Positions 33,807-58,465 of a stretch of DNA of 64,000 nt are shown piece after piece; positions within the stretch are counted from its first letter, which is position 1; every line of letters begins with the position of its first letter. Under the pieces are notes generated by a model, which had not been told where the DNA came from, searched no databases, and saw only the letters and a list, made by a program, of their open reading frames with translations. The DNA is from Macrostomum hystrix (Eukaryota > Animalia > Platyhelminthes), in NCBI GenBank assembly GCA_950097015.1, contig CATNEN010000003.1:10292001-10356000 (forward strand), read 5' to 3'. A program made the translations under genes and the position numbers.

Positions 33807-33892
33807 TCATTCAAGAGCTCCTTGCATATCCAATAGGCCTTTGGCTTTCTCCATCTGGTGCAAGAAATCGTAGAACTCGGTCAGGGAGAGCT
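33807..33892 (-). CDS. COMMD7: COMMD7-like, last exon
   Basis: ttttcAG; ELSLTEFYDFLHQMEKAKGLLDMQGALE*, similar to COMMD7 ELTLPQFYSFLHEME; AATAAA on minus strand at 33628-33623. Confidence 0.85.
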
Positions 33893-33939
33893 CTGAAAAG
33901 GGGATTTGAAAGGGAGGCGAGTTGAACTTTGAGGAAAGA

Positions 33940-34445
33940 AAGGGAGGGTAGAAAGAATGGAGTTTGGCTGTAGGGAGGGTAGAAAAAATGGAGTTTGGCT
34001 GTAGGGAGGGTAGAAAGAATGGAGTTTGGCTGTATGGAGGGTAGAAAGAATGGAGTTTGGCTGTAGGGAGGGTAGAAAGAATGGAGTTTGGCTGTAGGGA
34101 GGGTAGAAAGAATGGAGTTTGGCTGTATGGAGGGTAGAAAGAATGGAGTTTGGCTGTAGGGAGGGTAGAAAGAATGGAGTTTGGCTGTAGGGAGGGTAGA
34201 AAGAATGGAGTTTGGCTGTAGGGAGGGTAGAAAGAATGGAGTTTGGCTGTATGGAGGGTAGAAAGAATGGAGTTTGGCTGTAGGGAGGGTAGAAAGAATG
34301 GAGTTTGGCTGTAGGTAGGGTAGAAAGAATGGAGTTTGGCGGTAGGGAGGGTAGAAAGAATGGAGTTTGGCTGTAGGGAGGGTAGAAAGAATGGAGTTTG
34401 GCTGTAGGGAGGGTAGAAAGAATGGAGTTTGGCGGTAGGGAGGGT
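33940..34445. repeat. 31-bp minisatellite in COMMD7 intron 2
   Basis: GGGAGGGTAGAAAGAATGGAGTTTGGCTGTA units. Confidence 0.95.
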
Positions 34446-34535
34446 TGAGAGAACAGTCTTAGTTGAACACATTATTAAAATTACAAAAGCTGCATGTATG
34501 TGAAAATGACATTTGATGAGAAATGAGAAACTCAC

Positions 34536-34649
34536 CAAGAAACACACGCTCCCGCTCAGCGGGACTCGCATTGGCACCCTTCTGCATCAAAATGTTCAGG
34601 ACAACGGAAGTGTGACCAACGTCCCCTGGTTCACTGCTTGCCGCTGTGA
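34536..34649 (-). CDS. COMMD7: COMMD7-like, exon 2
   Basis: ccctAG ... G|GTGAGT, phase 1-1; VTAASSEPGDVGHTSVVLNILMQKG...ERVFL, similar to COMMD7 VTSGSSELEKVG...KKG. Confidence 0.85.
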
Positions 34650-34696
34650 CTAGGGAAATTAAAAAAATGGAGCTTGACAGTGGAAATCCCAGAGAC

Positions 34697-35365
34697 AGTT
34701 CCTCAGTCACTCCCTTACTGAGTTCCTCAGTCACTCCCTTACTGAGTTCCTCAGTCACTCCCTTACTGAGTTCCTCAGTCACTCTCTCAATGAGTTCCTC
34801 AGTCACTCCCTCACTGAGTTCCTCAGTCACTCCCTCACTGGGGTTCTCAGTCACTCCCTCACTGGGGTTCTCAGTCACTCCCTCACTGAGTTCCTCAGTC
34901 ACTCTCTCACTGAATTCCTCAGTCACTCCCTCACTGAGTTCCTCAGTCACTCCCTCACTGAGTTCCTCAGTCACTCCCTCACTGAGTTCCTCAGTCACTC
35001 CCTCACTGAGTTCCTCAGTCACTCCCTCACTGAGTTCCTCAGTCACTCCCTCACTGAGTTCCTCAGTCACTCCCTCACTGAGTTCCTCAGTCACTCTCTC
35101 ACTGAATTCCTCAGTCACTCCCTCACTGAGTTCCTCAGTCACTCCCTCACTGAGTTCCTCAGTCACTCCCTCACTGAGTTCCTCAGTCACTCCCTCACTG
35201 AGTTCCTCAGTCACTCCCTCACTGAGTTCCACAGTCACTCCCTCACTGAGTTCCTCAGTCACTCCCTCACTGAGTTCCTCAGTCACTCCCTCACTGAGTT
35301 CCTCAGTCACTCCCTCACTGAGTTCCTCAGTCACTCCCTCACTGAGTTCCTCAGTCACTCCCTCA
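34697..35365. repeat. 24-bp minisatellite in COMMD7 intron 1
   Basis: AGTTCCTCAGTCACTCCCTCACTG units. Confidence 0.95.
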
Positions 35366-35420
35366 ATGAATAATTTGGTGTTCAGTTTTGTTTAAATCTT
35401 GACAAAGCTGACTCTCTCAC

Positions 35421-35499
35421 CCGAAAGTCTCCAGTCCACATCGATAATTTGAGAATAATCCATTTCCTTTTCGAAGAATTTCGAAGAACTGCAGAATGG
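35421..35499 (-). CDS. COMMD7: COMMD7-like, first visible exon
   Basis: tttttcAG|CCA..., in frame with ATG 35463; MDYSQIIDVDWRLS is the COMM-domain DxxW start; G|GTGAG donor. Confidence 0.82.
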
Positions 35500-35867
35500 C
35501 TGAAAAATGTTCAGATTTTTTATATAAATCAGTGGCACATCAATATGTTGTTTAAATACCTAAAAATTCTAGTCGCGTTAACACAGGAAAATGTTAACCA
35601 CACAAAAAAATCACTTGTACTACTGTAAGTAATAAAAGCAAGAAAACAAGAACTGGTAGTTACATTGCAACCAAAAAATTAAAATTAGTGTATTTCTGCA
35701 TCAACAACACAAAAAGTTGGTCAACGTTTCGTAAATGACATGAACAATTGACAATCAAATGTTGAACATTATCATACAATTCAATAACACGATTTAGATT
35801 GGCACAACTCTATACAGGATAGCAGTTAAAGAAAAAAAAGTACATTTTAAGAACACTTATACCATTG

Positions 35868-36727
35868 AGTAGCAGCTGTCCCACAATGATATTCAGTCCG
35901 TCAGTAGCAGCTGTCCCACAATGATATTCAGTTCGTCAGTAGCAGCTGTCCCACAATGATATTCAGTCCGTCAGTAGCAGCTGTCCCACAATGATATTCA
36001 GTCCATCAGTAGCAGCTGTCCCACAATGATATTCAGTCCGTCAGTAGCAGCTGTCCCACAATGATATTCAGTCCGTCAGTAGCAGCTGTCCCACAATGAT
36101 ATTCAGTCCGTCAGTAGCAGCTGTCCCACAATGATATTCAGTCCGTCAGTAGCAGCTGTCCCACAATGATATTCAGTTCGTCAGTAGCAGCTGTCCCACA
36201 ATGATATTCAGTCCGTCAGTAGCAGCTGTCCCACAATGATATTCAGTCCATCAGTAGCAGCTGTCCCACAATGATATTCAGTCCGTCAGTAGCAGCTGTC
36301 CCACAATGATATTCAGTTCGTCAGTAGCAGCTGTCCCACAATGATATTCAGTCCGTCAGTAGCAGCTGTCCCACAATGATATTCAGTCCATCAGTAGCAG
36401 CTGTCCCACAATGATATTCAGTCCGTCAGTAGCAGCTGTCCCACAATGATATTCAGTCCGTCAGTAGCAGCTGTCCCACAATGATATTCAGTCCATCAGT
36501 AGCAGCTGTCCCACAATGATATTCAGTCCGTCAGTAGCAGCTGTCCCACAATGATATTCAGTCCGTCAGTAGCAGCTGTCCCACAATGATATTCAGTCCA
36601 TCAGTAGCAGCTGTCCCACAATGATATTCAGTCCGTCAGTAGCAGCTGTCCCACAATGATATTCAGTCCGTCAGTAGCAACTGTCCCACAATGATATTCA
36701 GTCCATCAGAGCAGCTGTCCCACAATG
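35868..36727. repeat. 35-bp minisatellite between TMEM18 and COMMD7
   Basis: CAGTAGCAGCTGTCCCACAATGATATTCAGTCCGT units. Confidence 0.95.
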
Positions 36728-36778
36728 CAACTCAATTTAAGTGTCAGACTGAGTATTAAGTGACTCAACTAGTACAAA

Positions 36779-37201
36779 TCACTCCTTCTTCTGATGCTTT
36801 TGATCCCTAGCCTCTGTGGCCAATCGAGCTCGCTCTCTATTAACTGTCAGATTCATAAGCTGATAAATTAATAGGCACAAAATCAAAGTGCAATTAATTA
36901 GCACAGGTACGGACCAAACGAATGTGATAAAAAATCCCGGCGAATCAAAGTACTGCTCGCCGAATCGTAGGGAGCGCCAATTTTCTGCCAGCTTCTGATT
37001 GGCCGAATCGGCTCCCAGCACGCTGACTAGTAGGATTATCAACAGGCCAAATAGTGCCCAGCAACGCCTACGCATAATCAGTATGGCTAGCAGGCACAGG
37101 GGATGAGCGCTCAGGATAAGCCATAGACCAGGTTCTGAGCGCCATGCCACGGTGGACAGAGCGGACCAAGGGTCCAACACCTGGCTAGTGTTAATCCAGT
37201 C
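36779..37201 (-). CDS. TMEM18: Transmembrane protein 18 (no genomic ATG; ORF starts at a splice acceptor)
   Basis: W-x-x-EP-x-L...H, NW...QYFDSPGFFI..VWSVP.L.N motifs and basic C-terminus typical of TMEM18; tttcAG|GAC at 37201, 140 codons to the stop. Confidence 0.9.
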   Translation of the reverse strand, partial: DWINTSQVLDPWSALSTVAWRSEPGLWLILSAHPLCLLAILIMRRRCWALFGLLIILLVSVLGADSANQKLAENWRSLRFGEQYFDSPGFFITFVWSVPVLINCTLILCLLIYQLMNLTVNRERARLATEARDQKHQKKE

Positions 37202-37292
37202 CTGAAATATTGTTGATGCTGCTTTGATAAGAAGTTTTTTTACTTAAATCGCTTTCATTTTTTTAAAAATAATTTAGAGGACTGCAATTTTA

Positions 37293-37552
37293 ATGATCTG
37301 GCACTGAAGGTTCAATGATATGGTACTGAAGGTTCAATGACCTGGTACTGAAGGTTCAATGATCTGGTACTGAAGGACTGAAGGTTCAATAATCTGGCAC
37401 TGAAGGACTGAAGGTTCAATAATCTGGCACTGAAGGTTCAATGACCTGGCACTGAAGGTTCAATGATCTGGCACTGAAGGACTGAAGGTTTAATGATCTG
37501 GCACTGAAGGTTCAATAATCTGGCACTGAAGGACTAAAGGTTCAATTATCGG
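37293..37552. repeat. 22/30-bp minisatellite between XRCC4 and TMEM18
   Basis: GGCACTGAAGG(ACTGAAGG)TTCAATGATCT units. Confidence 0.9.
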
Positions 37553-37852
37553 GCAGTCTATATACACTAGCTAAAAACATTTGATAAAGAAAAAAATAAA
37601 AATAATGAGTTCTATTTATTTTTTGTTGTTATTGTTACGAAGAGAACAATAAAAAAGTAGATAATGTACAGATACATTATAGAAATGACACTATTTTTAA
37701 AGTGCAGCTGCGTGCACAATTTAGCACACAAATTGGTCTAAAAACACGATAATAAAAGTTCTAGACAATAAGGTTTAGAAATTATATGTTCAACTTTGCT
37801 GTCGTTTTTTTCACACAAAGTATTAAAAAGTCATAATCTTAATTGATAAGAA

Positions 37853-38282
37853 TCAATCATCATCCACTTTTGCATTACTCCGAGTGCGACGCACAGGTGG
37901 CTTCTTTGAAGTCGCCGCCGGAGTAGATAACGACGGAGATTTTCGTTTCTTAACACCGCCACTAGCGGCTTTGATCTTGCCGCCATGTGGAGCAGATGCG
38001 GCAGTTTTGGACTCCGCATTGTCAGTTACACTGCCATCATCACTGTCGGTGCCTTTGATGTCACCGCTACCGCCGCCACTAGCTAGTTGACGAATCCGAG
38101 CTTTTTTAGAGTTCAAAATTCGACAAAATCCAGCCAGAAGATTGTCACGCATGACGGCCTTCTCAGCTGCTGCAGCCGTGTACTTGTCCAGTAGCTGTTC
38201 GCAGTGCTGACGCAGTTCAGCTAGCTCAGCTGACTGACTGGTGATGACCGCGTGAGCTTCCGACACTTGAGCTTCCAGTGCC
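37853..38282 (-). CDS. XRCC4: XRCC4-like NHEJ protein, exon 2 (coiled coil and tail)
   Basis: acacAG acceptor, phase 2; DNLLAGFCRILNSKKARIRQL similar to the XRCC4 ligase-IV-binding F..VLNEKK.KIR.L; acidic TDSDD segment and KKRK; AATAAA on minus strand at 37620-37615. Confidence 0.88.
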
Positions 38283-40339
38283 CTGTGTTTTGTTTCAAAT
38301 GTTAAAAACAGTATAAAATTAAAAATTTTGATTTATCACTTATTTTTGGGGAATAGAAAGTTCAACTAAAACTCAAACTGAGTGATCAGTTTTCTAAGAA
38401 ATCACAAAAAAATTAGGGGCAACTTAATTCAAGCAAAGAGAATTCACATTGCACAGTTCTTAACTTACTTATTAAGCTGATCTAAACAATTATTTTATAC
38501 ATATTGTCTTTGTATACCTAGTAGCTATCTTAACAAACTATTTATATCATTTTGCTATTTTAGAAAACTTGTAAGTTATACATGTGCAACCTCCCAAATC
38601 TTAGCCAGCCGTGCAACTTAGTTTTTGCTCTATTTACAACTTAGTTTGCTCTCTTTTGCTCTCCCCTTCTTCCTTTTCTTCACGCCTTCCTTTTTTGCCC
38701 CTTGGTCCCCCCTTTGATTTTTTTGTGCTGGTTTTTGCGACTTACCTTGCTTGGCCCTTGTTTCACCCAGCCGATTTGGCCGGGTCAGCCAGGTGTTGCG
38801 CATGTATGAAGTTATATAGACAATTTAAAATGTCAACCTTAGGAAATTGCCAAGCTAGCCACAATCTCTAAATATTGGTAACACATGTATATATAACAAA
38901 AACAGCCAGAAGCTTTCAAAAGTTGCTATAGATATACTATAGAAGTAGTATAGAAGTATAGTATAAATAGTATAGAAGTTGCTATAGAAGTATAAACTTC
39001 TAATTAAGTTTAGAAGCTTGGCACAGAGAGACAGGATGCTGACTATACTAGATGAACTCTAAAATATTGAATTTATACAGAATTTCATAATACAATAAAT
39101 TAAAACAGATTTACTATAATTTTTACAAAGGCTGATTAACTTTTCTGCACTTTAAATACTAGGAGATTCAGTTCTTTTCATTTCCAGTCCAGTTCAGTCC
39201 GGTAGTCATTTGATTATTCGTCCAGTTAACCAGTTAACCACCCAAGCCCAAGGACTTAATTTCTCCCCTTTCAATGAGCAGGAGCAACGATCCTCCCAAA
39301 GACCACTCTTGCCCTGCTAATAGCCATCTTCAGTATTGACCTCACAAAGACCAAACTATACCCTTGAACTTAGTTAGTCCCTGAAACAACCAAATTTCTG
39401 GAAAAGGTTATAATTTTTTTAATTAGTTGATAAGCAAAAATAATTTGAGACACAAACTTCAAATCTGAATGACTGTCCTTTTGCAGCTTGGTAATTATTT
39501 TATCTTGCAAATGATAGAGGTTCTTGTGGTAGTGCTAGGGTAATGTATCATCAACCAAACAAGAAAGAGTATTTTTTATTTCAAACCTATGCTAAAGATT
39601 TTCTATTTAAGATAGGCCTATGATGATAAACCAAAAGCCAAGTTATAGAAAACAGTTACATCTTTCTAAAAAGTACCTGCTTTTGCTATTTTGTCAAATA
39701 GAAAAAAGTTATTCCTGCTTTTCATCTAAAACCAAACAATGATTTTCAAACCAAATGGAGAATTTGATGTTTGGTTTTACAATTTGAATCAGTGGTTTAA
39801 TCTTATTTTAGGGAGTGAACTATCATGAATTATGTCATTTAAAAGCATTTTTCGGGCTTGATAAATAACTGCATTTATGGTCATTTAATTTGCAAGAAAC
39901 CAACCACATACAATCTTCATCTAAAGTACATAGGCCCCTACTGAAAAAATGTTGTCAAAACGTATGCTTTTGCAATAAAAATTTCTATTGAAACATCAAT
40001 ATCTTTCTTTCCTCTTAATGCTTCATTGCACGCCATGCCTCAGCTTGTAGATAATTTCTTCGACTTTCAAATTAGTTGTTCTATGAAACACAATAGCTTG
40101 TTTCTGTCTTGCACAAGACCAAGGAAGGAGTCAAAATTCTTGTTTGGTTTTGAAGATACACTGTTCAGTTGATGATAAATTACCCTACAACCCTACAACC
40201 TTACAACTTAGTTATAAGTTATAACTCAGTTAACCGGACAAATAACAACTGCCTTTATTTTTTAACAAAAAAGGAGTTAAATACTATGACAATGCAAAGT
40301 AATATTAGATTAAAAAAAAGAAACATTGAAGGAACTCAC

Positions 40340-40791
40340 AGAGCAAATTTCTTTGAATATTCTGTTTCTAAAGCAGTAGATGTAGACTTACTGCCACTGA
40401 TTTCAACAATATCGAACTGAACTACTTTAATGGTGATTTCATCAACATATTTGCAGACAGAAAGGGATTTGCTAGCTTTATCTACTCTAGCAAAGAAAGC
40501 ACCTTTATCTTGCAAAATAGTCTGCAGCAAAGCTGTAAATGATTCATTCGTTAGACTTTCTTTAAATGTGGTAGAAATACGTAGCAAAGAGGCAACCGAT
40601 CCATTTAAAAGCAAGCCACAAGCTGAATTTATATCTACAGCAGAAGAAATGATGGCAAACTCAGTGGCAGAACCTTCACACGAAACCACAACAGTAGAAC
40701 TACTCATGTTTCTACTGTTAAAAGCGTTCTTAACGAGTAAACCAGCGAGCGAACTTGACGTCTTTCGATTAGACAAGAGAGAAGCAAGCAT
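40340..40791 (-). CDS. XRCC4: XRCC4-like, exon 1 (head domain; ATG 40791 or 40707)
   Basis: Non-repetitive ORF ending CT|GTGAGT in phase 2, joining exon 2 in frame; total 265-293 aa. Confidence 0.75.
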
Positions 40792-40993
40792 GAGTTTGCC
40801 TTTTTTCCAAGAAAAAACATTTGATTTAAATTCCCGTTTTAGCTTAAAACAAAAAACAAAAGAAGTATTTAAAAAAAAGTTTTTTATGATAATAACTACT
40901 TAAAACAGAAATTAAGCCGTAAATTAAAAAACTCTTGATTAATTTAATAAACTAACAGTAAAAAATTTTTTCTTTTTCTGGTCACATTTTTAT

Positions 40994-41029
40994 CAAGGAC
41001 CACTAGAAGAAGACTTCTAGTGGTCCTTG
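40994..41029. mobile_element. 36-bp hairpin mini-MITE with 8-bp TSD
   Basis: CAAGGACCACTAGAAG-aaga-CTTCTAGTGGTCCTTG perfect 16-bp inverted repeat, flanked by direct ATTTTTAT (40986-40993 and 41030-41037). Confidence 0.7.
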
Positions 41030-41088
41030 ATTTTTATATGAACAGTATGGAATAACTTTATTTAAGCTCTTCTTAGACTTAGTTAATA

Positions 41089-41506
41089 GGTACCGAGTCA
41101 CCGACCACTTTGTCGAAAGCGAAAGGTTTTTCTTTGCCTTTTACTCGGTTTTGTTTTACTTTATATACAATTAACCATCTGAAATATTCAAATAATTAAT
41201 TTGTTTTCGAATAATTTGTATTTGAGACATTATAAATAAATGTCATGTTTTTCTCTCAACCCAGCCGCCCCTTAGGCTTTCAAGAATATTTAGTATGCTA
41301 ATAACACATCGAATCAGTCATGTGTTATTGAGGACGTAATTTCGTCGGACTCAGTTTTGGAGACTGAGGAGACTTGAATATTTCAAATGGTTAATTGGAT
41401 ATAAAGTAAAACAAAACCACAGTAATGACTGCGCCAAAGTGGTCAAGCATTAAGGCAAAGAAAAAAATTTCGCCTATGTGGTCTTTCGCCAAAGTGGTCT
41501 GAAACC
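41089..41506. mobile_element. MULE/Foldback-type MITE
   Basis: 9-bp TSD TAGTTAATA (41080-41088, 41507-41515); long imperfect TIRs (GACCACTTTG.CGAAAG and GGTTTTGTTTTACTTTATAT.CAATTAACCAT.TGAAATATTCAA on both arms). Confidence 0.82.
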
Positions 41507-44500
41507 TAGTTAATAACCAACGGTTGAACTAATTTCTGAATTAGCCTAGACTCATTATTTTATGTTCTGTTTTGAAATTCAGATTTTATGCATGTCTGAG
41601 GCACCTCTGACGTTCATGAAGAAAGGATTTGATAAAGGTGTGTTCATTGTTTCTTTAAGTTTGGTTTGTTAAAAAATGGTACTTCTTTTTTGGTATCTCA
41701 GGTACCATGCATTTTGAAACAATGTCATTGCTTTTTGGTACCGCTTCCTATTGGTGACTCAGTGAGCAGTTTTATTGGCCCTAGGCCCTATAATCTAACT
41801 ACATAATGGCACAAGACGATAGGGAAACCACTGACGCTTTAGCAAAGTACATCATAGAAATCTCTAAAATAAGGGAACAGCTGCCGAGACTACGAGCTTG
41901 TATTAATGGGTACAGATCAAATCGTTGTATTCTAAAATGTCATATGATGATGACGATTTGCAGAAAAGTATCACAATAGGCCTATTCTATTTAATATTAC
42001 AATCTTGACTATTTGTATTGATCTCAGATCTCATGCTCATGTTTCAATTCAAGTCAAACAATGACTTGGCTCTAAGAGATGTGTGCCTGTTTATAAACTC
42101 ACAGTGGGCACAACAACTTGAACTAGGGCCTATAGTATCAGTGTACTTGTGCATGTGTACATCATGCAAATAATTGGCATTGCTATGGAATGACGATGCA
42201 ATAGAAGGGCATATTTGAGTTACATGTACATAGCTACATGCTGAATGAAATTCAGTTCATGTGTTATGTAATGTGCAATGTACTTTGAGTGGCTCAAATG
42301 ATGGCTCAGGCCAAAATGTATGCTTCACTTTGCTTATGCTTTAAACAAAGCTGTTTATGGAGCCAATAAAATAAAAATATGACGATTTAGATCATCTTAT
42401 TTTTTTCCAACTGGCATAGCCCCTATGATGATTTAGAATATGACAATTTGGGTAGGAGCTGTATTAACAGTAACATTTAACAATATTTATTTCATATTTT
42501 TTTATTCCTGGCATCCCTTGTATTTTTACTACTCTTATTTTTAATAACTTTGCTTTTCCCTTCCCAGCTCAATAGTTGAATCCTACAAAACTTAGTTTTT
42601 TATGTTTTTCATTGTCCATGAAAATATTTGTTGTCAAAAAAAATATAAAAAAAAATATCAGAGCACTCATAGATGGCGTGCCTGGTTTAATAAAAATGAT
42701 GATAATAATAATAATATTAAATTATGATGTGGAGTGTGCTGCGGGAATCGAGTGGGAATGTGAGCCAGCAGAATTTTTCAAATTTTTAGGCAGTAATAAT
42801 CGCGACCCACATAGCAGCTGGCCGCAAAACAAGATCATTAATCTTAGGGCCGGGTTTGGGGCGGTGGTGAATTGAGTAGCCGCCGAATTCCCTCTCCCTG
42901 GATCTGTTTTAGCCCCTGTAGGAATGACTGATCGCGGCCATAACTCTAATGTATGAGCTAGTCTAGGTCATAATTCTCCTCCAAACTGCAATCAGATGTT
43001 GGGAATCACTCGGGCATTATGACTAATCATTAATTCTTCATGTCCCCACTTCTTTACAGTATTCGAGCCCAGCTCAACTTTATGACCTTCCTCCTTTTAG
43101 ATACATGTAATGTCACTGTAGGCAGGTCGGCGCCTGCGCTTCCCATTGTCCTGGCGGAGTAACAATTGCTGGCCAACTGCTGATGGCTGTTCGCGCAGAA
43201 CATCTGTTGTTTCCCACCGCTGGCTCATTGGGTGATGAGGGTGGCCTATAGCCGCCCCAATCCCTCGTTGACAGGCTGGCGCGAATGTGGGTTATTTTGA
43301 TGGATGTCGAGGTTGGCGTGCTGCAGGACTATTTAAGTAAGCGCGCTGCGCTGCTCCCTCTAGGACCTTCTTCTCCACCTTTCTACTCCCCCTCCTACCG
43401 TCGGACCTACCTTTGCTGGGCTGGACTCCCACCGGACCCAGCACTTCCATTCTGGACCCAATTCCCCCACATAGGGCTTAGACCCTAGAGCTATAAGCTC
43501 AGCCAAGGGCTCACAGGCTCATTGCCTGCGTCTAGTCCCCCAATAGTGCAAGCCACCTCTTTAGGTGAGCTCTCGAATTGAGCCTTAGAGCTCCACTAGT
43601 GCGTTGGCCCCCGCCAGCTCACGTCTAGCACTTTTCCCCTCCCTGCCTTGCTAATCTTGCCCGTCCCACCCACAAGAGCTACAGGACTGCAGCACGCGGC
43701 CAATCAATACTCAGATATGTAACCCGCGTAGCGGTTATTGATTGTTATTCCAAAGGGACTTTTCTTTTAGCTAGGCGGCACTTTAGTGGGAAAGGGCACT
43801 AGGATTTTTGGTTCAATATAAAGCTTTCATCACTATCCAATCACATTGCTTTAGGCCAATTTAAAGTACAATTTAAATCCTTTCCTATTGTTCGCCTCCA
43901 TGTTTATTTTATCTCTTAGACAGCCCTCAGAGATGAGTGGCTAAACTCTTAGAGGGTGGGCTCTGGTGAGGCCAAGCTGAAGGCTGCGGCAGGAAGACAA
44001 CTGTAAGCGCGTGTGAGAGCAATAGGGAGCTAGGGATTCGTGGGCAGATCTCTGCCGGGGTGTGGGGGATTCCTTGGTGGGTTTTCCTCTCTTCCTGGCG
44101 GGTCAAAGGGTACGTGTCAAACTCCCTTGCCAATAGAGTTCCTATTCTTTCCCCCCTCCTCTCGCGACTGCCGCCACAGGAGCAAGAGCAAGGGTCAAAT
44201 AATCCTTTGCTTGCGCAATCACTCAGCCAGTGTTCTGCTTTATCTCTCCAGCCTCTGATCTCCTCTACTCACACAGATTCGGATTTGTTAGTTACTTAAT
44301 GTGTAAGTTGCAGTCTAATGTATAGAATGTGTCTGATGTCTTATGAGTAGGGTTCTGGCTATGGATTCTCATTCAAGTTCTTAGTACCACCTTTCTAGAC
44401 CCCTGTAGCGCGAATTCAGGAATCCCCTGTTGAGGCGTGTCTCAATCCATTCTGGGGCTCTCACCCCAGTCTAAAACGGAAGTTGCAGAATGCCCTATTT

Positions 44501-46497
44501 TCGGCTTGTCTAGATCTGCGTGATAAACTGGGAGCTGTGTACTCCGGGGACCCAAGTTCCCAAATGTCTGCAGTGGCAACGTAGGCGCATTGGGTGGTGG
44601 CGCTACCCTAGATCAACTATCCGCTTTGCCGATAGCCTTTCCGCATTTCTACGACAAGGGCCTAGGCCGAATCGACCACCGCTACCAAGGTTAGGAGTCA
44701 GTTGCGCACGCACTACTGACGACAGTAGACTAGTTAGCCCTGTCCTGTCCGATTCCGGGCAGTCCGACACCTCTCCTTAGACTTTTAGCCAGTTTCGAGC
44801 ACTGCTTGGGGTAGGCATGGCAGTCATGTCTGTGGCCTATGGGATGAGTGGGACTGGCCAGCCTGAGGCCGATAGGACCACTCCCTGCATCCGCTGAACC
44901 TCCCTCTCTCCCTTCATCTCCTCCCTCTCTCCGCGACATCTCGCGTGTAGCTAGGCAGATATTTAAGTCGACTGTCGCCCACCTTAGGAATCTTCTCTCT
45001 TGAGGGCAGGTCAGCAGTTTCAAAACTCCCATCCATTTCAATTATTAATTTATATATAGGCCTATATATGTAATGTTGATTTACTAATACATGATTGATG
45101 CATGAAAGCCATTCTTTTGATTTTTGATCCCCATTTCTTAGGCTATGCACTTTTGTTAGCAAAGGCAATCCCTGTGTTCTGTATAAAATATGCATTTAAA
45201 TAGTAGAAAAGGATTTCTACTTTAATAAGAATTCCTTTCTCAATTTTAAAGATGTGTAACAAATGTAAATATAAGGGGCATGACTAAGTAAACAGTAAGA
45301 TAGGGCATTCTATAATTTTCTGCATTTTTAGTCAATAGTTACACTAGCCTAATAACACCCAAGAAAAGATTGGATTATATGTTACATGGCATATTTTATT
45401 CTATTGTTTTACATGTCAAGAAAATATTGGGCTCTATAGGACCAATCTTAAGGGATCAATAACAAAATATTGCTATGTTTTAGGGCTAGCTTTTGCAATT
45501 GTAGATGTAAAATGGTAGATCAAAAAGGAAGCCGAATCTTGAAGTTTGAACGTTAATCATAGAGCCTAGGTTGCCAATTTTATTTTATGTGCGTAGCATC
45601 TATATACGAGATCTATTTGTTTAAATATTTCTTTAATATGCATTTTTGTGCTTGTTTGTAGTACTATTAACTTGTATTAGTTGCACATATTTGATATCAT
45701 TAGCCACAATCAAACCATGAATATAGTATTTTTAATTTGTTTTACTGCATTTTTAAAATAGCTTACATGTGTATGCCACTTTAAAAGTAAACCATTTATT
45801 AATCATTTAACTTAAATTTTATTTACGTATGACACTACCAAATACTTTTTGTCACCCAGAAGCCATATGAAAAAGCACTGACTAGTACAAAATGCTAGGT
45901 AGTAAAATTTATAAATCCAGAATATGTATTGTCAATTTATAAGTTAGTCATCAAATTCTTGCATACTTTTATTAGTACCTGTCATTGTGTCATATGTTTT
46001 CAATCAATAGTAAGTTATTAAATCATTAAAACATCTCAATAGGAAATGAAAAGAGACTAGATTTTGCACTTGTGCATAAAACCAATAAAGAATGTAACTT
46101 AGGATGACTTTGAAACTGAGAAAAAGCTTGCTTGGCTAGACAGGCCATAGATAAAATATGAAATAATTTTGTTATGTAAATAATAACAACTAACTAGCTG
46201 GTTAGATAAAAAGTTGCTATGGAGTCTAAACGGAGGGTATATCCATAGTCTGGATCATGCTAGGTGCATGCCAGAAAAATAATTGTGAGGCTTGGGTGCA
46301 TGCTAAAAGTGCTTATTTTGCATACTTAAAAGTTCAAACAAAAAAAGCAATTTTTTTGTGCTCTACTTAATTAACCACAAACATATCAAAACGAATACCT
46401 GTGGCATACTGGAAAAATTTGTGCTGGTTATTTTTGCTTTATATAGTTTCCAACTTTACAGCATCTTAAAAATCAAAGCTAATTGTCCTATTTACAG

Positions 46498-46848
46498 CTA
46501 CTTCAAATCAGCTTTCAAATTTTTCTAGTGTCAGCTTTGTCTGACATAGGCGATGTACTGGCTGCTAAAATTGATCGCATTCTGACTCGCAACTCTATTG
46601 GTGAACCAGTTGCATATGAATTATCAGAATTATTTGCTAAACATACTACTCACAGTAGCGCTGGTAGTGTCCTAGTAGTAAGCGCCGATCCTAGGCCAGG
46701 CCAGACTGATGTATCGGCGGCATTCGATCCGGCCTCCGCTTTGGCCACGATTCGTTTAATTGTGCCGCCACAGTTAGGCACCGGAACTGATTGGCGTCAG
46801 TCGCGTCTGCCTTTGGGTTTCTGCTTTTTAATTGCCGCTCCACCTCAG
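46498..46848 (+). CDS. OAF: Out-at-first homolog, exon 1 (signal-peptide-like start, no genomic ATG)
   Basis: tttacAG|CTA CTT CAA..., LLQISFQIFLVSALS hydrophobic leader, RNSIGE and CF positions compatible with OAF; CAG|GTAGTA donor, phase 0. An alternative acceptor exists at 46528. Confidence 0.72.
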
Positions 46849-46916
46849 GTAGTATTTAGATGGTTTTTTAATTGAAAAAATTAGCACTCCATGGATAATT
46901 ATCGACCACTCCTTAG

Positions 46917-47462
46917 GATCAACTTCCAATGCCTGTGCTGCGTCTGCACTTGTCGGCAATGATGAAGCAGCTGCAGTCTGTCACTATTCCCCTACCAGCC
47001 GAAGAGGATCGTGGCAAATCGGCTCACTGGGCTGGCCGGTCTGTTGCCATAGCAACTCTGGCCAAATTGTCGCCAGGCCTAGCCAAGCATTGCGCAGTAG
47101 CTGTTGGCAGTGAAGGCGCGGTGCACGCAGCTCCTGAAGATCTGACATTGTCTGCGCAATTGAAGCCAAACGATGCAGCTACGAAGAGTCTAGTCCAGTC
47201 CATTAATAATGAGAAAACTAGTTTCCCAACTTCAACTTGTCGCCAATTGTGGTATAAGGCAGTCGGTGCTGTTGATTCGTGCATCTGTCAGTTAGCAGCC
47301 TGTCTGCTTTGGTATCCTTGCGGCTTGCATTCGTGCCCAGCCGCATTGTCTGCTATTAGTTCGCCGATGCCGTGTCGCAATGACCAGTTGCGTTCTTGTC
47401 GCGTCTGTCATCAGTTTCATTTTCGAGTCGATAATGTCACAGCTTGTCCCCTGTATGCGTGA
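46917..47462 (+). CDS. OAF: Out-at-first homolog, exon 2
   Basis: ccttAG acceptor, phase 0; EEDRG and the Cys-rich CxC...WYPCGL..C...RSC..C..F.F.V pattern of OAF; ATTAAA at 47549. Confidence 0.88.
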   Translation, partial: DQLPMPVLRLHLSAMMKQLQSVTIPLPAEEDRGKSAHWAGRSVAIATLAKLSPGLAKHCAVAVGSEGAVHAAPEDLTLSAQLKPNDAATKSLVQSINNEKTSFPTSTCRQLWYKAVGAVDSCICQLAACLLWYPCGLHSCPAALSAISSPMPCRNDQLRSCRVCHQFHFRVDNVTACPLYA

Positions 47463-48170
47463 TACAGTTTTTTAATGCAATTGTATAATATGTTATTTGC
47501 AGTATTTAATTCCTTATAAATTTACAAAAACTTTATGCATTGTTTCTCATTAAAAATATCAATTTTGCTAGACCAAAATTTTCTATATAATCAAATTCTG
47601 TGATATTTCTGAGCTATTTAATTTATTTCAGATTACATCAAACATTTATTAATTAGTTATTTAAATACCAGTTAGCTACCAGTTCTAAGAACAATAGTAA
47701 ACAGCCCCAAACACCACAGCAACCAAGAGCACCTTGAAACCATTTTAAAACAAACACTTTAGCAGCAAATCCCATGCACCATAGCAACCGATCCCCATCA
47801 CCATAGCAACCGATCCCCATCACCATAGCAACCAGTCCTAAGCACCTAAGCACCTGCTTAAAAATCCGCTGCTTTAAAATGGCACCACAGCCTCAAATCC
47901 CAAGCTCCATAGCAACAAATCCCAAGCTCTATAGCAACAAATCCCAAGCCCCATAGCAACTAATCCTAAGCCCCATAGCAACTAATCCAAAGCCCCATTG
48001 TAACTAATCCTAAGCTCCATAGCTAGTAATCCCAAGCATCAAGATTTTTTTCACGCTCAGAACTCAGATTTACTCTAGCCAACAAGCAGCGAAAACATTA
48101 AGTCTTTCACGATCACAGTCTCCAACCGAAACCCATCTTTCAGCGTAGCCGCCAGCCGAGGTTTCTTTCA

Positions 48171-48407
48171 ATGACGTCATCAGGCTTGGATCGGGTCCAG
48201 GCTTGGCGTGGCCAATCAGAATCAGCTAGACGCCAAGACATGCTACGCGATCTTCAACACCTCGACGCCGGAGCTCGCGGCATTGAACGCGACCTCCGAC
48301 AACTTCTGGCTGGTCGTCGGGCTTGCGCTGGAGTCGATTTGGCCTCTCTATTAGAATTTGACACCGAATTAAATTTCAATCGACTGGCTGACAGGCAAAA
48401 ATTACAG
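48171..48407 (+). CDS. CCDC112: CCDC112, exon 1
   Basis: ATG 48171, preceded by an in-frame tttcAG acceptor at 48143; coiled-coil-like sequence; CAG|GTAAAC donor in phase 0 matches exon 2. Confidence 0.72.
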
Positions 48408-48431
48408 GTAAACATCCACTTGCTAATGAAG

Positions 48432-48960
48432 TCTGCTTGCAGAAGGAACTGCCTGAAATGAAGGCTTCTTGCAGAAGGAACTGCCTGAAATGAAGGCTGC
48501 TTGCAGAAGGAACTGCCTGAAATGAAGGCTTCTTGCAGAAGGAACTGCCTGAACTGAAGGCTGCTTGCAGAAGGAACTGTGCCTGAACTGAAGGCTGCTT
48601 GCAGAAGGAACTGTGCCTGAACTAAGGGCTGCCTGCAGAAGGAACTGTGCCTGAACTAAGGGCTGCTTGCAGAAGGAACTGCCTGAACTGAAGGCTGCTT
48701 GCAGAAGGAACTGTGCCTGAACTGAAGGCTGCTTGCAGAAGGAACTGTGCCTGAACTAAGGGCTGCCTGCAGAAGGAACTGTGCCTGAACTAAGGGCTGC
48801 TTGCAGAAGGAACTGTGCCTGAACTGAAGGCTGCTTGCAGAAGGAACTGTGCCTGAACTAAGGGCTGCTTGCAGAAGGAACTGTGCCTGAACTGAAGGCT
48901 GCTTGCAGAAGGAACTGTGCCTGAACTAAGGGCTGCTTGCAGAAGGAACTGTGCCTGAAC
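48432..48960. repeat. 32-34-bp minisatellite at the start of CCDC112 intron 1
   Basis: GCAGAAGGAACTGTGCCTGAACTGAAGGCTGCTT units. Confidence 0.93.
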
Positions 48961-48964
48961 TTTG

Positions 48965-49250
48965 CCGGGGGTTGTAGCCTAGTGGTTAAGAGCGTCGGAC
49001 TCACGACTTAAAGGTTCGGGGTTCGATAGCCGACTCCTGGAGAAATTTGTGTCCTTTAGCAAGTCACTTAACTGTGCATTGCTTCAGTTCAACCAGCTGT
49101 TAATTGTGTACCAGCATTAGTTGAGGAAATTGTCTATGGAAGTGGCGTCCTACCAGTACATGGATTAGGCAGTCGTATGCAGCATTCAATAGCTGCGGCT
49201 GTGCTGTCGGCTACACATCTGACTCAATCGGGGAAGGTGCATTCAACTAT
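48965..49250 (+). mobile_element. SINE family A
   Basis: TAGCCTAGTGG A box, GGTTCGAT B box, CORE-like body, and 3' GGCTGTGCTGTCGGCT.CACATCTG shared with the 27046 copy. Confidence 0.82.
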
Positions 49251-49899
49251 CGTGAAGAAATAAAATTTCTAAGATTGCATGAGTACCGTCTTCTTTCTAA
49301 TATACTAAAAATGAACTGTTTATTTACTTACTTGGTTGTAATTGATTTTCTCCCGAACGGCTCAACCGATTTTCACCATTTCTTCACCAAAATATGCGAA
49401 ATATGGGCAGAATTTTACACGTATTTTTATTAAGCTTAACTCCATTGCTAAGGGGATTAAATATTCGAAAAACATGATTTTTTAAAGGTCAAACCATCTT
49501 GGCCTATTGAGAATTTTACTCACTGCCACTGAATTAGAATTGCATCGTCAAATTGCGCAACAACCCCTAGCTGATTGAATTTGAAGCCTGCACTCTGGAG
49601 ACAAATTGGAAATAAATGTACACAACCAACCGTGAGACTGAGTGTACTCTATTTTCTCACTTCATTGTACAAAGCCAGAACTTTGATAATTCATTTTATA
49701 AGGCTGATTTTTGCACCCACTAACCAACAGTCGGAATAGCCGATGTGTAGGCACTAGGAATAGGTTATAGGCTAGGCTAGGGTTCGATTCTGCACTGCGT
49801 CAAATCATTTAAACTAATTTTCAGCCAGTAGTGATTGAAGATTATTTTGATTTATTTTTTTCATTTCGTAAATAAAATATCATAAATCATAGCAAATCT

Positions 49900-52200
49900 G
49901 AGTTTGAATCATTGCAACAATAGAGTCTAAATCATGGCAAAACCAGAGTCTGAATCATGGCTACACCAGCGTTTGAATCATGGCTAAACCAGAGTCTGAA
50001 TCATGGCTACACCAGAGTTTGAATCATGGCTACACCAGCGTTTGAATCATGGCTAAACCAGAGTCTGAATCATGGCTACACCAGAGTTTGAATCATGGCT
50101 AAACCAGAGTCTGAATCATGGCTACACCAGAGTTTGAATCATGGCTAAACCAGAGTCTGAATCATGGCTAAACCAGAGTTTGAATCATGGCTAAACCAGA
50201 GTCTGAATCATGGCTAAACCAGAGTCTGAATCATGGCTACACCAGAGTTTGAATCATGGCTAAACCAGAGTCTGAATCATGGCTAAACCAGAGTTTGAAT
50301 CATGGCTAAACCAGAGCTTGAATCATGGCTGAACCAGCGTCTGAATCATGGCTAAACCAGAGCTTGAATCATGGCTAAACCAGAGTTTGAATCATGGCTA
50401 AACCAGAGTTTGAATCATGGCTAAACCAGAGTCTGAATCTGAATCATGGCTAAACCAGCGTCTGAATCATGGCTAAACCAGAGTCTGAATCATGGCAAAA
50501 CCAGAGTCTGAATCATGGCTAAACCAGAGTTTGAATCATGGCTAAACCAGGGTCTGAATCATGGCTAAACCAGAGTTTGAATCATGGCTAAACCAGGGTC
50601 TGAATCATGGCTAAAACAGAGTTTGAATCATGGCTAAACCAGGGTCTGAATCATGGCTAAACCAGAGTCTGAATCATGGCTAAACCAGGGTCTGAATCAT
50701 GGCTAAACCAGAGTTTGCATCATGGCTAAACCAGAGTCTGAATCATGGCTAAACCAGAGTCTGAATCATGGCTAAACCAGAGTTTGAATCATGGCTAAAC
50801 CAGAGTCTGAATCATGGCTAAACCAGAGTCTGAATCATGGCAAAAATAGAGCTTGAATCATGGCTAAACCAGCGTCTGAATCATGGCTAAACCAGAGCTT
50901 GAATCATGGCTAAACCAGAGTTTGAATCATGGCTAAACCAGAGTCTGAATCATGGCTAAACCAGAGTCTGAATCATGGCTAAACCAGAGTCTGAATCATG
51001 GCAAAACCAGAGTCTGAATCATGGCTAAACCAGAGTTTGAATCATGGCTAAACCAGGGTCTGAATCATGGCTAAAACAGAGTTTAAATCATGGCAAAACC
51101 AGAGTCTGAATCATGGCTAAACCAGAGTTTGAATCATGGCTAAACCAGGGTCTGAATCATGGCTAAACCAGAGTCTGAATCATGGCTAAACCAGAGTCTG
51201 AATCATGGCTAAACCAGAGTCTGAATCATGGCAAAACCAGAGTCTGAATCATGGCTAAAACAGAGTTTAAATCATAGCTAAACCAGCGTCTGAATCATGG
51301 CTAAACCAGAGTTTGAATCATGGCTAAACCAGAGTTAAAATCATGGCTAAACCAGAGTTAAAATCATGGCTAAACCAGAGTCTGAATCATGGCTAAACCA
51401 GAGTCTGAATCATGGCTAAACCAGAGTCCGAATCATGGCTAAACCAGAGTTTGAATCATGGCTAAACCAGGGTCTGAATCATGGCTAAACCAGAGTCTGA
51501 ATCATGGCTAAACCAGAGTTTGAATCATGGCTAAACCAGAGTCTGAATCATGGCTAAACCAGAGTCTGAATCATGGCAAAACCAGAGTCTGAATCATGGC
51601 TAAACCAGAGTTTGAATCATGGCTAAACCAGGGTCTGAATCATGGCTAAAACAGAGTTTAAATCATGGCAAAACCAGAGTCTGAATCATGGCTAAACCAG
51701 AGTTTGAATCATGGCTAAACCAGGGTCTGAATCATGGCTAAACCAGAGTCTGAATCATGGCTAAACCAGAGTCTGAATCATGGCTAAACCAGAGTCTGAA
51801 TCATGGCAAAACCAGAGTCTGAATCATGGCTAAAACAGAGTTTAAATCATAGCTAAACCAGCGTCTGAATCATGGCTAAACCAGAGTTTGAATCATGGCT
51901 AAACCAGAGTTAAAATCATGGCTAAACCAGAGTTAAAATCATGGCTAAACCAGAGTCTGAATCATGGCTAAACCAGAGTCTGAATCATGGCTAAACCAGA
52001 GTCCGAATCATGGCTAAACCAGAGTTTGAATCATGGCTAAACCAGGGTCTGAATCATGGCTAAACCAGAGTCTGAATCATGGCTAAACCAGAGTTTGAAT
52101 CATGGCTAAACCAGAGTCTGAATCATGGCTAAACCAGAGTCTGAATCATGGCTAAACCAGAGTCTGAATCGTAGCCAACTAGAGTTTGAATCATGGCAAA
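49900..52200. repeat. 23-bp minisatellite inside the Helitron
   Basis: GAATCATGGCTAAACCAGAGTCT units. Confidence 0.95.
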
Positions 52201-52379
52201 ATTTTTCTTTTGTCATTGAATTGAATTTTGAGTTTGTTATCTCATAACGTCATAATGATATATATTTGTATGATAAATATTTTGCCTAATAATCATTTAA
52301 TTGTTGTTCTTCTCAATTTTCTACAAAAGAAGCTAATATAAAAATTAACTGGGCATCATCATCAATAAGGAGTCCTCAT

Positions 52380-54530
52380 CAAATGGGGGATCATTGTCAA
52401 CTGGGCGATCATTGTCAACTGGTTGATCATTGTCAACTGGGGCTTCATTGTCAACTGGGGGAAAATTGTCAACTGGGGGATCATTGTCAACTGGGGGATC
52501 ATTGTCAACTGGGGGATCATTGTCAACTGGGGGATCATTGTGAACTGGGGGATCATTGTCAACTGGGGATCATTGTCAACTGGGGGAACATTGTCAACTG
52601 GGGGATCATTGTCAACTGGGGGATCATTGTCAACTGGGTGATCATTGTCAACTGGGGGATCATTGTCAACTGAGGGATCATTGTCAACTGGGGTATCATT
52701 ATCAACTGGGGGATCATTGTCAACTTGGGAATGATTGTCAAATGGGTGTTCATTGTCAACTGGGGGATCATTGTCAACTGTGGGATCATTGTCAACTGGG
52801 GGATCATTGTCAACAAGGGGATCATTGTGAACTGGGGGATCATTGTCAACTGGGGATCATTGTCAACTGGGGGAACATTGTCAACTGGGGGATCATTGTC
52901 AACTGGGGGATCATTGTCAACTGGGTGATCATTGTCAACTGGGGGATCATTGTCAACTGAGGGATCATTGTCAACTGGGGTATCATTATCAACTGGGGGA
53001 TCATTGTCAACTTGGGAATGATTGTCAAATGGGTGTTCATTGTCAACTGGGGGATCATTGTCAACTGGGGGATCATTGTCAACTGGGGGATCATTGTCAA
53101 CTGGGGTATCATTATCAACTGGGGGATCATTGTCAACTTGGGAATGATTGTCAACTGGGGGATCATTGTCAACTGGGGGGATCATTGTCAACTGGGGGAT
53201 CATTGTCAACTGGGTGATCATTGTCAACTTGGGGATCATTGTCATCTGAGGGATCATTGTCAACTGGGGTATCATTATCAACTGGGGATCATTGTCAACT
53301 GGGGGATCATTGTCAACTGGGGGATCATTGTCAACTGGGGGATCATTGTCAACTGGGTGATCATTGTCAACTGGGGGATCATTGTCAACTGGGGGATCAT
53401 TGTCAACTGTGGGATCATTGTCAACTGGGGGATCATTGTCAACAAGGGGATCATTGTGAACTGGGGGATCATTGTCAACTGGGGATCATTGTCAACTGGG
53501 GGAACATTGTCAACTGGGGGATCATTGTCAACTGGGGGATCATTGTCAACTGGGTGATCATTGTCAACTGGGGGATCATTGTCAACTGAGGGATCATTGT
53601 CAACTGGGGTATCATTATCAACTGGGGGATCATTGTCAACTTGGGAATGATTGTCAAATGGGTGTTCATTGTCAACTGGGGGATCATTGTCAACTGGGAG
53701 ATCATTGTCAACTGGGGGATCATTGTCAACTGGGGGATCATTGTCAACTGGGGTATCATTATCAACTGGGGATTATTTTCAACTTGGGAATGATTGTCAA
53801 CTGGGGGATCATTGTCAACTGGGGGGATCATTGTCAACTGGGGGATCATTGTCAACTGGGTGATCATTGTCAACTTGGGGATCATTGTCATCTGAGGGAT
53901 CATTGTCAACTGGGGTATCATTATCAACTGGGGATCATTGTCAACTGGGGGATCATTGTCAACTGGGGGATCATTGTCAACTGGGGGATCATTGTCAACT
54001 GGGTGATCATTGTCAACTGGGGGATCATTGTCAACTGGGGGATCATGGTCAACTTGGGGATCATTGTCAACTGTGAGATCATTGTCAACTGGGTGATCAT
54101 TGTCAACTGGGGAATCATTGTCAACTGGGGGATCATTGTAAACTGGGGGATCATTGTCAACTGTGAGATCATTGTCAACTGGGGGATCATTGTCAACTGG
54201 GGGATCATTGTCAACTGGGGGATCATTGTCAACTGGGGGATCATCATCAACTGGGGGATCATTGTCAACTGTGGGATCATTGTCATCTGGGGGATCATTG
54301 TCAACAAGGGGATCATTGTCAACTGGGGATCATTGTCAACTGGGGGTTCATTGTCAACTGGGGGATCATTGTCAACTGGGGGATCATCATCAACTGGGGG
54401 ATCATTGTCAACTGGGGATCATTGTCAACTGGGGGTTCATTGTCAACTGGGGGATCATTGTCAACTGGGGGATCATCATCAACTGGGGGATCATTGTCAA
54501 CTGGGGGATCATTGTCAACTGGGGGTTTAT
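52380..54530. repeat. 18-bp minisatellite inside the Helitron
   Basis: GGGGGATCATTGTCAACT units with higher-order blocks. Confidence 0.95.
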
Positions 54531-57790: not shown

Positions 57791-57825
57791 AAAGTCTGTT
57801 TACAGAAAGAACTGTGCCTGAACTT

Positions 57826-58000
57826 TTCTGGGATTGTAGTCTAGTGGTTAAAAGCGTCGGACTCAAGACTTAAAGTTTCGGGGTTCGATGGCCAAGTCCT
57901 GGAGAAATTTGTGTCCTTTATAGCAAGTCACTTAACTGTGCATCGGCTGTGCTGTCGGCTACAAATCTGACTCAATCGGGGAAGGTGCAGTCAACTATCG
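57826..58000 (+). mobile_element. SINE family A, internally deleted paralog of the 48965 copy
   Basis: Same head and tail and the same flanks as the 48965 copy. Confidence 0.8.
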
Positions 58001-58354: not shown

Positions 58355-58465
58355 CCCCTGGCAGACGGTCGGCAGGCGGACTCAAGCAGGGGCGGCCTGT
58401 GCGAGAGCCTGTCACCGTTCAACAGACTCACAAACGGTTAAACGGTGCTGAGTAATAGTGAGAAT
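58355..58465 (+). pseudogene. Duplicated 3' fragment of the nested lectin gene
   Basis: Near-identical to about 56301-56408 (CCCTGGCAGACGGTCGGCAG...), with C>S and the stop lost; fused 5' to a SINE head. Confidence 0.85.

Follow-up and report, generated by a model that had tools for sequence, protein, structure and literature searches.

TMEM18 and OAF of the flatworm Macrostomum hystrix probably take their initiator codon from a spliced leader that ends in AUG

How can a gene be translated when its conserved reading frame opens at a splice acceptor and carries no start codon of its own? The question is raised by a stretch of Macrostomum hystrix DNA of 64,000 nucleotides (the window, within which all positions below are counted). 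An earlier note had pointed to four such acceptors, those of TMEM18, OAF, a COMM-domain gene and a CCDC112-like coiled-coil gene, all in phase 0, and had proposed that a spliced leader (SL), added by trans-splicing, donates the missing AUG. A check against the sequence reproduced all four junctions (Table 1): from the first base onwards, each exon is open in the conserved protein's frame, and none of the 4 genes has an in-frame ATG in the stretch from the upstream stop to the acceptor. The chance figure of 1 in 81 that had been attached to this agreement is an invalid statistic, because the acceptors were chosen by eye, two of them for the very fact that an ORF opens there; support for SL-donated starts comes instead from RNA and from orthologues.

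Table 1 Features of the four genes and their surroundings, with positions in the window
Feature	Position	Strand	Remarks
COMM-domain gene, exons 2 and 3	34649-34536; 33892-33807 (including stop)	-	tandem-repeat intron between them
COMM-domain gene, exon 1	35421..35499	-	putative SL acceptor AG 35501-35500; own in-frame ATG 35463-35461, 12 codons downstream
TMEM18, single coding exon	36779..37201	-	acceptor AG 37203-37202; 140 codons; stop 36781-36779; no usable ATG of its own
In-frame TAA	37244..37246	-	precedes the TMEM18 acceptor; ends the reading frame of the sole upstream ATG, 37258
XRCC4-like gene, last coding exon	37853..38266	-	ORF; precedes the TMEM18 acceptor by ~650 nt; candidate first operon gene
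In-frame TAA	46480..46482	+	precedes the OAF acceptor by six codons
OAF, exon 1	46498..46848	+	opens at acceptor AG 46496-46497; 117 codons; boundaries re-defined here; covered by RNA-like contigs
OAF, intron	46849..46916	+	GT..AG, 68 nt; spliced out in all three contigs
OAF, exon 2	46917..47462	+	181 codons plus stop; OAF_C domain; first in-frame ATG of the gene at 46929
CCDC112-like (coiled-coil) gene, exon 1	48144..48407	+	SL acceptor AG 48142-48143; own in-frame ATG 48171, 9 codons downstream; exon 2 from 59611

A genomic AUG can give rise to a full-length protein neither in TMEM18 nor in OAF, while the COMM-domain and CCDC112-like genes have possible start codons of their own. The TMEM18 exon opens with GAC TGG, its first in-frame methionine is residue 43, past the first hydrophobic segment, and neither of the two ATGs that precede it in the exon is in frame; no in-frame ATG lies between the upstream TAA and the acceptor. 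Translation thus bears out the earlier description of a stop upstream of the gene and of a first methionine beyond the first TM segment. The product matches Pfam PF14770 (E = 1.6e-25) over profile positions 3-118 of 118, and the gene is single copy in the genome.

The first codons of OAF exon 1 are CTA CTT, and no in-frame ATG, that is, no methionine, occurs among its 117 codons, the first ATG in the exon being out of frame. The ATG-less exon and the in-frame TAA that precedes it were found where they had been reported. Residues 1-14 are strongly hydrophobic by hydropathy and could form the h-region of a signal peptide; when joined to the AUG of the leader, the exon would read MLLQISFQIFLVSALS/D, with the appearance of a signal peptide. 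A Pfam search of exon 1 gave no match, and the OAF_C domain (PF22873, E = 1.2e-8) is encoded by exon 2. OAF is also single copy in the genome.

The acceptors of the COMM-domain and CCDC112-like genes are in frame with downstream ATGs at the positions given earlier, and the agreement of frame may here be due to chance, because the ATGs, 12 and 9 codons downstream, are the genes' own. In the COMM-domain gene, an alternative AG at 35490-35489, 11 nt downstream of the putative acceptor, would set the SL AUG out of frame. The exon borders of this gene were picked to fit a Macrostomum lignano protein of 85-91 aa, for which a precomputed Pfam COMM match (PF07258) exists; Pfam, run on each exon separately, gave no match on the three short exons themselves. 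The earlier name COMMD7, which denotes a protein of ~200 aa with an N-terminal HN and a C-terminal COMM domain, has to be given up, as the ORF is of only 80 aa here, the size of a COMM domain, and of 85-91 aa in M. lignano. CCDC112 is retained as the putative name of the earlier note only, because Pfam gave no match on the exons of that gene.

SL genes of M. hystrix were located by exact matching with an 18-base pattern, the 3'-terminal bases of the M. lignano leader. At least 31 exact copies of the 18-mer are present in the genome, compared with 0-1 for a control pattern, and exact copies of the SL gene are arranged in arrays with a spacing of ~11.6 kb on contigs C15, C17 and C42. The SL gene folds in an SL-RNA-like manner (z = -3.3); an Rfam search with it gave no match, only a chance-level snoRNA hit. 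In the genome sequence, the leader exon ends in ...TTATTGCATG/GTAAG (in a longer view, ...GACTCAATTTATTGCATG/GTAAG), such that AUG constitutes its last three nucleotides, directly before the GU donor. The terminal AUG that had been expected from flatworm leaders at large is therefore present in M. hystrix, and the objection that the species might have no AUG-terminated leader fails. The paper on the M. hystrix genome (Wiberg et al. 2023, PMC10468722) remarks, in one passage, on the terminal ATG of the leader, and a passage of this G3 paper describes the whole leader as highly conserved between the two Macrostomum species. At -3 of the SL AUG stands U, a context that is weak under vertebrate rules, which counts against SL initiation.

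Transcript-like contigs from three public runs (X2, X3 and X4) were aligned over OAF and the CCDC112-like gene. The runs have no RNA label on record, and the transcript nature of the contigs is judged from their splicing, SL ends and empty introns; a further run, X1, contributed two short pieces only. For the CCDC112-like gene, contigs of 1702 nt from X2, X3 and X4 align at 48143-48407 with an 11.2-kb intron spliced out, and 25 SL letters are located immediately 5' of acceptor 48144. The loose 5' end of the X3 and X4 contigs at this acceptor is ACTGCGAAGACTCAATTTATTGCAT, which together with the shared G at 48143 is identical to the 3'-terminal letters of the SL exon. At 48144(+), where the earlier note had called for mapping of SL-containing reads, the SL letters thus immediately precede the acceptor in contigs of X2-X4, and the SL is joined at this site.

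The match of the OAF contigs (three contigs from the three runs) begins at 46497, and each contig carries the same 23 unaligned foreign letters at its 5' end; the G at 46497 is common to the OAF side and the SL AUG, a situation identical to that at 48143. RNA had been called for at 46498(+) as well, and the contigs do start at the acceptor; we infer that the 23 foreign letters are the SL, for which the predicted letters are TGCGAAGACTCAATTTATTGCAT. The SL is very probably joined at 46498, and the uniform 5' cut of the contigs would reflect the behaviour of a k-mer assembler at a sequence common to many mRNAs. Contig depth is zero over 45064-46442, and no upstream OAF exon is present in the contigs of X2-X4. 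Joining of a cis exon at 41592-41637 to 46529, the alternative offered earlier for OAF, does not agree with contigs that are unbroken from 46497 across 46529. The 3' ends of the OAF contigs lie at 47462-47570, and the contigs of both genes align to the genome with 0 mismatches.

A protein database search for these genes returned M. lignano entries only and none from M. hystrix. TMEM18 is represented by four records labelled 'partial', which start with DWID or WID (two begin with WID, one residue later than a third, DWID) and have their first methionine at about residue 115, and OAF by three 'partial' records with the signal-peptide-like starts LLSKHW or SKHW. Three of the four records for the COMM gene are 'partial', the starts being PCLM..., CPTPCLM... 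or M.... The M. lignano records of all three genes begin at or near the same residues as the frames of M. hystrix, and the intact TMEM18 and OAF ORFs share 68% and 52% identity with their M. lignano counterparts, which are also without ATG. As far as the sequences go, the absence of a start codon from TMEM18 and OAF is common to M. hystrix and M. lignano. A 5'-partial ORF in M. lignano signifies a frame that is open to the end of the mRNA, and is silent on phase relative to the SL. Tags of the type Mlig002839g1/g2 designate M. lignano genes that were separated from a single transcriptional unit where SL sites had been mapped by experiment (PMC5730564). The records of TMEM18, OAF and the COMM gene all derive from units divided in this way, and within one such unit TMEM18 and the COMM gene bear the numbers g1/g2 or g2/g3. 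The XRCC4-like gene, TMEM18 and the COMM gene of M. hystrix follow one another on the same strand, about 650 and 1280 nt apart, which makes them a candidate SL-resolved operon, the name of the first gene deriving from a weak Pfam match (XRCC4_CC, E = 0.0056, below cut-off). TMEM18 would be trans-spliced at the putative SL acceptor 37201, and the COMM gene at the putative acceptor 35499.

The best explanation of the locus, in which we place high confidence, is that these are ordinary SL-trans-spliced Macrostomum genes and that the leader AUG is the initiator for TMEM18 and OAF. In both, the acceptor stands exactly before codon 2, so that the leader AUG would serve as initiator and would be the sole AUG to give the full-length protein. 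If trans-splicing did not take place, TMEM18 would be made without the first of its membrane segments, or in a wrong reading frame, and OAF would be deprived of its signal peptide and of the N-terminal 122 residues. In the COMM and CCDC112-like genes, the SL AUG would lengthen the protein slightly at its N terminus, or would be bypassed via leaky scanning. The proposal that all four genes depend on trans-splicing can be upheld for TMEM18 and OAF, which have no other usable AUG, also in M. lignano, but not for the COMM and CCDC112-like genes with their own ATGs. In our reading, the dependence of TMEM18 and OAF on the SL AUG, at which ribosomes presumably initiate, is obligate.

For TMEM18, and perhaps for the COMM gene, an upstream ATG exon might be cis-spliced instead, 37201 (or 35499) being an ordinary internal acceptor. 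Flatworm acceptors can serve both cis- and trans-splicing (PMC12582326), and many TMEM18 relatives are longer by 8-20 residues at the N terminus, although many are not. However, the four 'partial' M. lignano TMEM18 records share the same end residue and have gene boundaries at mapped SL sites, and the Pfam profile of TMEM18 is covered from position 3. Furthermore, there are no coding exons between the COMM gene and TMEM18, where only a tandem repeat and about 370 nt of AT-rich DNA are found, and we regard a cis-spliced start as unlikely. Far less probable still are an assembly error, in which a wrong base call (as might be the case at the TAA 37246-37244) masks a genomic ATG, and decay of the genes into pseudogenes. 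ATG 37258 is indeed in frame, four codons ahead of this TAA, but the OAF and CCDC112-like contigs are free of differences to the genome, and TMEM18 and OAF have intact, conserved ORFs, lack the ATG in M. lignano too, and are each the only copy in the genome.

The preferred reading of TMEM18 and OAF does not extend with the same force to the other two genes. For the COMM and CCDC112-like genes, the chances are about even that the in-frame SL AUG is coincidental and that the proteins derive wholly or partly from the genes' own ATGs by leaky scanning, in which case these genes are uninformative on SL initiation. Not only are such ATGs present, but the stretch from acceptor to ATG in the COMM gene is unconserved (PFCSSSKFFEKE here versus PCL or CPTPCL in M. 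lignano, where one record starts at Met), and the COMM ATG has G at both -3 and +4, compared with U at -3 of the SL AUG. The in-frame share among trans-spliced mRNAs of S. mansoni is 28%, which is about chance (cited in a section of PMC9851317). On the other hand, scanning ribosomes normally start at a 5'-proximal AUG that lies some 35-45 nt from the cap, and flatworm SL AUGs are reported as functional initiators (Cheng 2006, as cited in sections of PMC9851317 and PMC12582326).

TMEM18 and OAF are new examples of a mechanism that is already published for flatworms, and knowledge of the mechanism itself is unchanged. The 3'-terminal AUG of a flatworm SL as initiator methionine goes back to work on Schistosoma mansoni (Cheng, Cohen, Ndegwa and Davis 2006, cited in passages of PMC9851317, as 'slORFs', and of PMC12582326). 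Like the S. mansoni slORFs, as these passages present them, the genes described here combine a leader AUG before the GU donor with a phase-0 acceptor before codon 2 and ORFs without a start of their own, and the SL AUG would be the sole route to the full protein. They differ from the slORFs of these passages in that the species is a free-living macrostomid, the genes are other ones (TMEM18, OAF) and the start codon is absent in two Macrostomum species; moreover, SL-AUG translation is reported there for Schistosoma, whereas here it is read from sequence and contigs only. The SL/TBONE polycistronic units of Macrostomum (Wudarski et al. 2017, PMC5730564; Wiberg et al. 2023, PMC10468722) have the same leader 3' end. 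The relevant passages of these two papers mention the terminal ATG and do not single out AUG-dependent genes, and the NCBI label for the M. lignano orthologues is 'partial'.

Gene finders that require an ATG truncate such genes, label them 'partial' or miss them; where the OAF signal peptide is lost in annotation, secretome predictions would be wrong. TMEM18 and OAF would add two genes whose expression strictly needs trans-splicing, and since this dependence is apparently common to two diverged Macrostomum species, they would be convenient test genes in a flatworm with transgenesis. It could equally well be true or false that leader-AUG dependence is a conserved, selected trait of particular genes across Macrostomum, with OAF's signal peptide and all of TMEM18 as examples and trans-splicing as an obligatory licence for translation. 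If true, trans-splicing could work as a switch, with unspliced or cis-processed transcripts being untranslatable. The signal peptide of secreted OAF would start with an SL-donated methionine. TMEM18 and OAF are neighbours within one window, and the gene order, i.e., OAF, a gap, TMEM18 and the COMM gene, is that of the M. lignano protein accessions.

The reading frame of TMEM18 comprises 140 codons with its earliest in-frame Met at residue 43, past the first hydrophobic segment, and the two ATGs preceding this Met in the exon are both out of frame. In searches run on single exons, the frame covers positions 3-118 of 118 in the Pfam TMEM18 profile (E 1.6e-25), and since most animal relatives have a length of 138-170 aa, the 141-aa product that the earlier note derived by adding one Met is of normal size. 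The features which that note described for TMEM18 (acceptor, upstream in-frame stop, first TM segment without ATG) and for OAF (acceptor, TAA, exon without ATG) are all present, and the earliest in-frame ATG of OAF, 46929, lies in exon 2. Both genes have one copy in the genome, which leaves no further copy that could provide an ATG.

Features of the four genes (window positions)
Feature	Position	Strand	Remarks
TMEM18 putative spliced-leader acceptor, ...atatttcAG/GAC TGG	37201 (first exon base)	minus	
In-frame TAA closing the TMEM18 frame	37246-37244	minus	no ATG between TAA and acceptor
COMM-domain gene, putative acceptor	35499 (first base)	minus	own ATG 12 codons downstream, in frame
COMM-domain gene, three exons	33807-35499	minus	80 aa from own ATG, COMM domain only
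OAF acceptor, ...ctatttacAG/CTA CTT	46498 (first exon base)	plus	
In-frame TAA upstream of OAF acceptor	46480-46482	plus	
OAF exon 1	46498-46848	plus	redefined from transcript joints; 117 codons without Met
OAF intron, GT..AG, 68 nt	46849-46916	plus	transcript joints
OAF exon 2	46917-47462	plus	transcript joints; OAF_C domain (PF22873)
CCDC112-like gene, acceptor	48144 (first base)	plus	own ATG 9 codons downstream, in frame

The only relatives of the window's TMEM18 and OAF found in a protein database search are from Macrostomum lignano (68% and 52-53% identity, respectively), and all of these are labeled partial. The four TMEM18 records start with DWIDTSQ... (one) or WIDTSQ... (three), compared with DWINTSQ... 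in the window, and have their earliest Met only at about residue 115; the three OAF records start with LLSKHWLLVLISVAAYNLLLTTDA... or SKHW..., and the window's OAF with LLQISFQIFLVSALSD.... In the M. lignano annotation, reads containing the spliced leader (SL) set the points at which transcriptional units were split into genes, and ORFs were called on the trimmed mRNAs (PMC5730564); a 5'-partial M. lignano ORF means that the frame is open up to the trans-splice site. This comparison bears indirectly on the putative acceptors at 37201 and 35499. Gene order in the window matches the M. lignano protein accession order, i.e., OAF, one gene, TMEM18 and the COMM-domain gene (locus tags for the latter two, Mlig002839g1/g2, Mlig018444g1/g2 and Mlig009302g2/g3).

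The AUG-terminated leader presumed in the earlier note is encoded in the genome. An 18-base pattern, the 3'-terminal part of the leader of M. lignano, has at least 31 exact genomic matches (reversed control pattern, 0-1), including arrays of ~11.6-kb period on three contigs (C15, C17, C42). The sequence of one SL gene copy (L007) is ...gacggtctcttactgcgaagactcaatttattgcATG/gtaagacacc..., after which come a U-rich stretch resembling an Sm site and a hairpin at the end; its fold (z -3.3) is typical of SL RNAs, the donor pairing with the leader. The chromosomes also carry many scattered degenerate SL-like copies, ending in ATA or with the TTG altered. According to passages of the M. hystrix genome paper and its supplement, the SL "likely contains the final ATG" and flatworm SL AUGs sometimes serve for initiation (PMC10468722).

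About half of the sequence words of 46300-48500 are present in four runs of one 2020 study. Contigs assembled from three of these (X2-X4) and from a 2024 run (X1) were aligned over 42700-48600. The X2-X4 contigs behave as transcripts, though the run records carry no RNA label, because introns are removed (both the 68-nt OAF intron and intron 1 of the CCDC112-like gene, 11.2 kb long, are missing) and contig depth is zero over introns and between genes; the exons show 0 differences. For the CCDC112-like gene, each of the three runs yields a 1702-nt contig that matches from 48143, with the letters following 48407 matching at 59611. The loose end before 48143 in X3 and X4 is ACTGCGAAGACTCAATTTATTGCAT, which is the leader minus its last G, and the missing G coincides with that of the acceptor AG. 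This places the join, SL-AUG/CGT, at 48144. At OAF, the three contigs (1029, 974 and 921 nt) match from 46497, the G of the AG, each with exactly 23 unaligned letters ahead of it, and the 1.4 kb upstream of the acceptor has no contig coverage. The same one-G offset, a stretch of identical length in each of three independent assemblies and the lack of coverage upstream fit contigs ending inside a sequence common to many mRNAs, and hence the 23 letters are probably the SL; the expected start at 46498 is observed, and the identity of the foreign letters is what we infer. The cis-spliced alternative for OAF, 41592-41637 joined to 46529, was rejected, as the contigs run unbroken across 46529 and do not show that form.

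In the proposed mechanism, a capped leader ending in AUG would be spliced to a phase-0 acceptor, and the SL AUG would be the first AUG met by scanning ribosomes. The conserved TMEM18 and OAF proteins would be reachable only from this AUG, with the following AUGs out of frame, whereas in the COMM-domain and CCDC112-like genes it would be skipped or add 12 or 9 residues. Leader-dependent translation, claimed previously for all four genes, is thus predicted from sequence for TMEM18 and OAF, which have no other usable AUG, but not for the other two, whose in-frame ATGs are present as described. The earlier note had put four of four acceptors in phase at about 1 in 81 by chance, with the caveat that they were picked by eye. 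About one-third of acceptors are in frame by chance, and those of the COMM-domain and CCDC112-like genes add no statistical weight. For S. mansoni, the in-frame share is given as 28% (cited in a passage of PMC9851317).

After the donated Met, the OAF N-terminus has a hydrophobic stretch (Kyte-Doolittle 9-residue mean 1.6-2.2 across the first 10 windows) and then small residues, ALS/D in the window versus TDA/S in M. lignano, which gives it the look of a signal peptide in both species, as had been suggested. Since the SL AUG would be the sole start giving conserved OAF, its secretion would depend on trans-splicing. The mechanism is the same as SL-AUG initiation in Schistosoma mansoni, where more than 40 cDNAs need the SL AUG (Cheng et al. 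2006, as cited in a passage of PMC9851317), and flatworm SLs reported so far all end in ATG, according to a passage of PMC12582326. TMEM18 and OAF are new examples of a mechanism already known, to which a missing start codon common to a second Macrostomum species is a modest addition.

The COMM-domain gene had been named COMMD7, however, no HN-domain N-terminal exons were found between it and TMEM18. It is a conserved COMM-only mini-protein and no full COMMD7, because the M. lignano orthologue is likewise short (85-91 aa). The residues between its acceptor and own ATG differ from M. lignano, i.e., the extension is not conserved, and a second AG lies 11 nt downstream of the putative 35499 acceptor; splicing there would shift the SL AUG into another frame.

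Tandem repeats with units of roughly 24-37 nt fill introns and spacers of the XRCC4-like (provisional name) > TMEM18 > COMM cluster (33930-34460, 34700-35400, 35870-36750 and 37280-37400) and cause long spurious ORFs in six-frame listings; more generally, the window holds intron-containing animal genes with long tandem repeats between them. Within intron 1 of the CCDC112-like gene (48408-59610, plus; exon 2 begins at 59611) are long tandem repeats, at about 52.3-54.6 kb, and a Cys-rich 269-aa ORF (55562-56371, plus), possibly a nested gene. Only ~680 nt separate the OAF stop from the proven SL acceptor of the CCDC112-like gene downstream (47462-48144, plus), and the OAF contigs stop near 47570; both genes may be transcribed as one primary transcript (operon), which would lengthen, on its upstream side, the CCDC112-FAXDC2-SYF2 operon noted separately. 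Dozens of short transcript-like contigs of 90-95% identity with many loose ends align to 42700-44800; this stretch appears to be an expressed family of dispersed repeats rather than part of the OAF gene.
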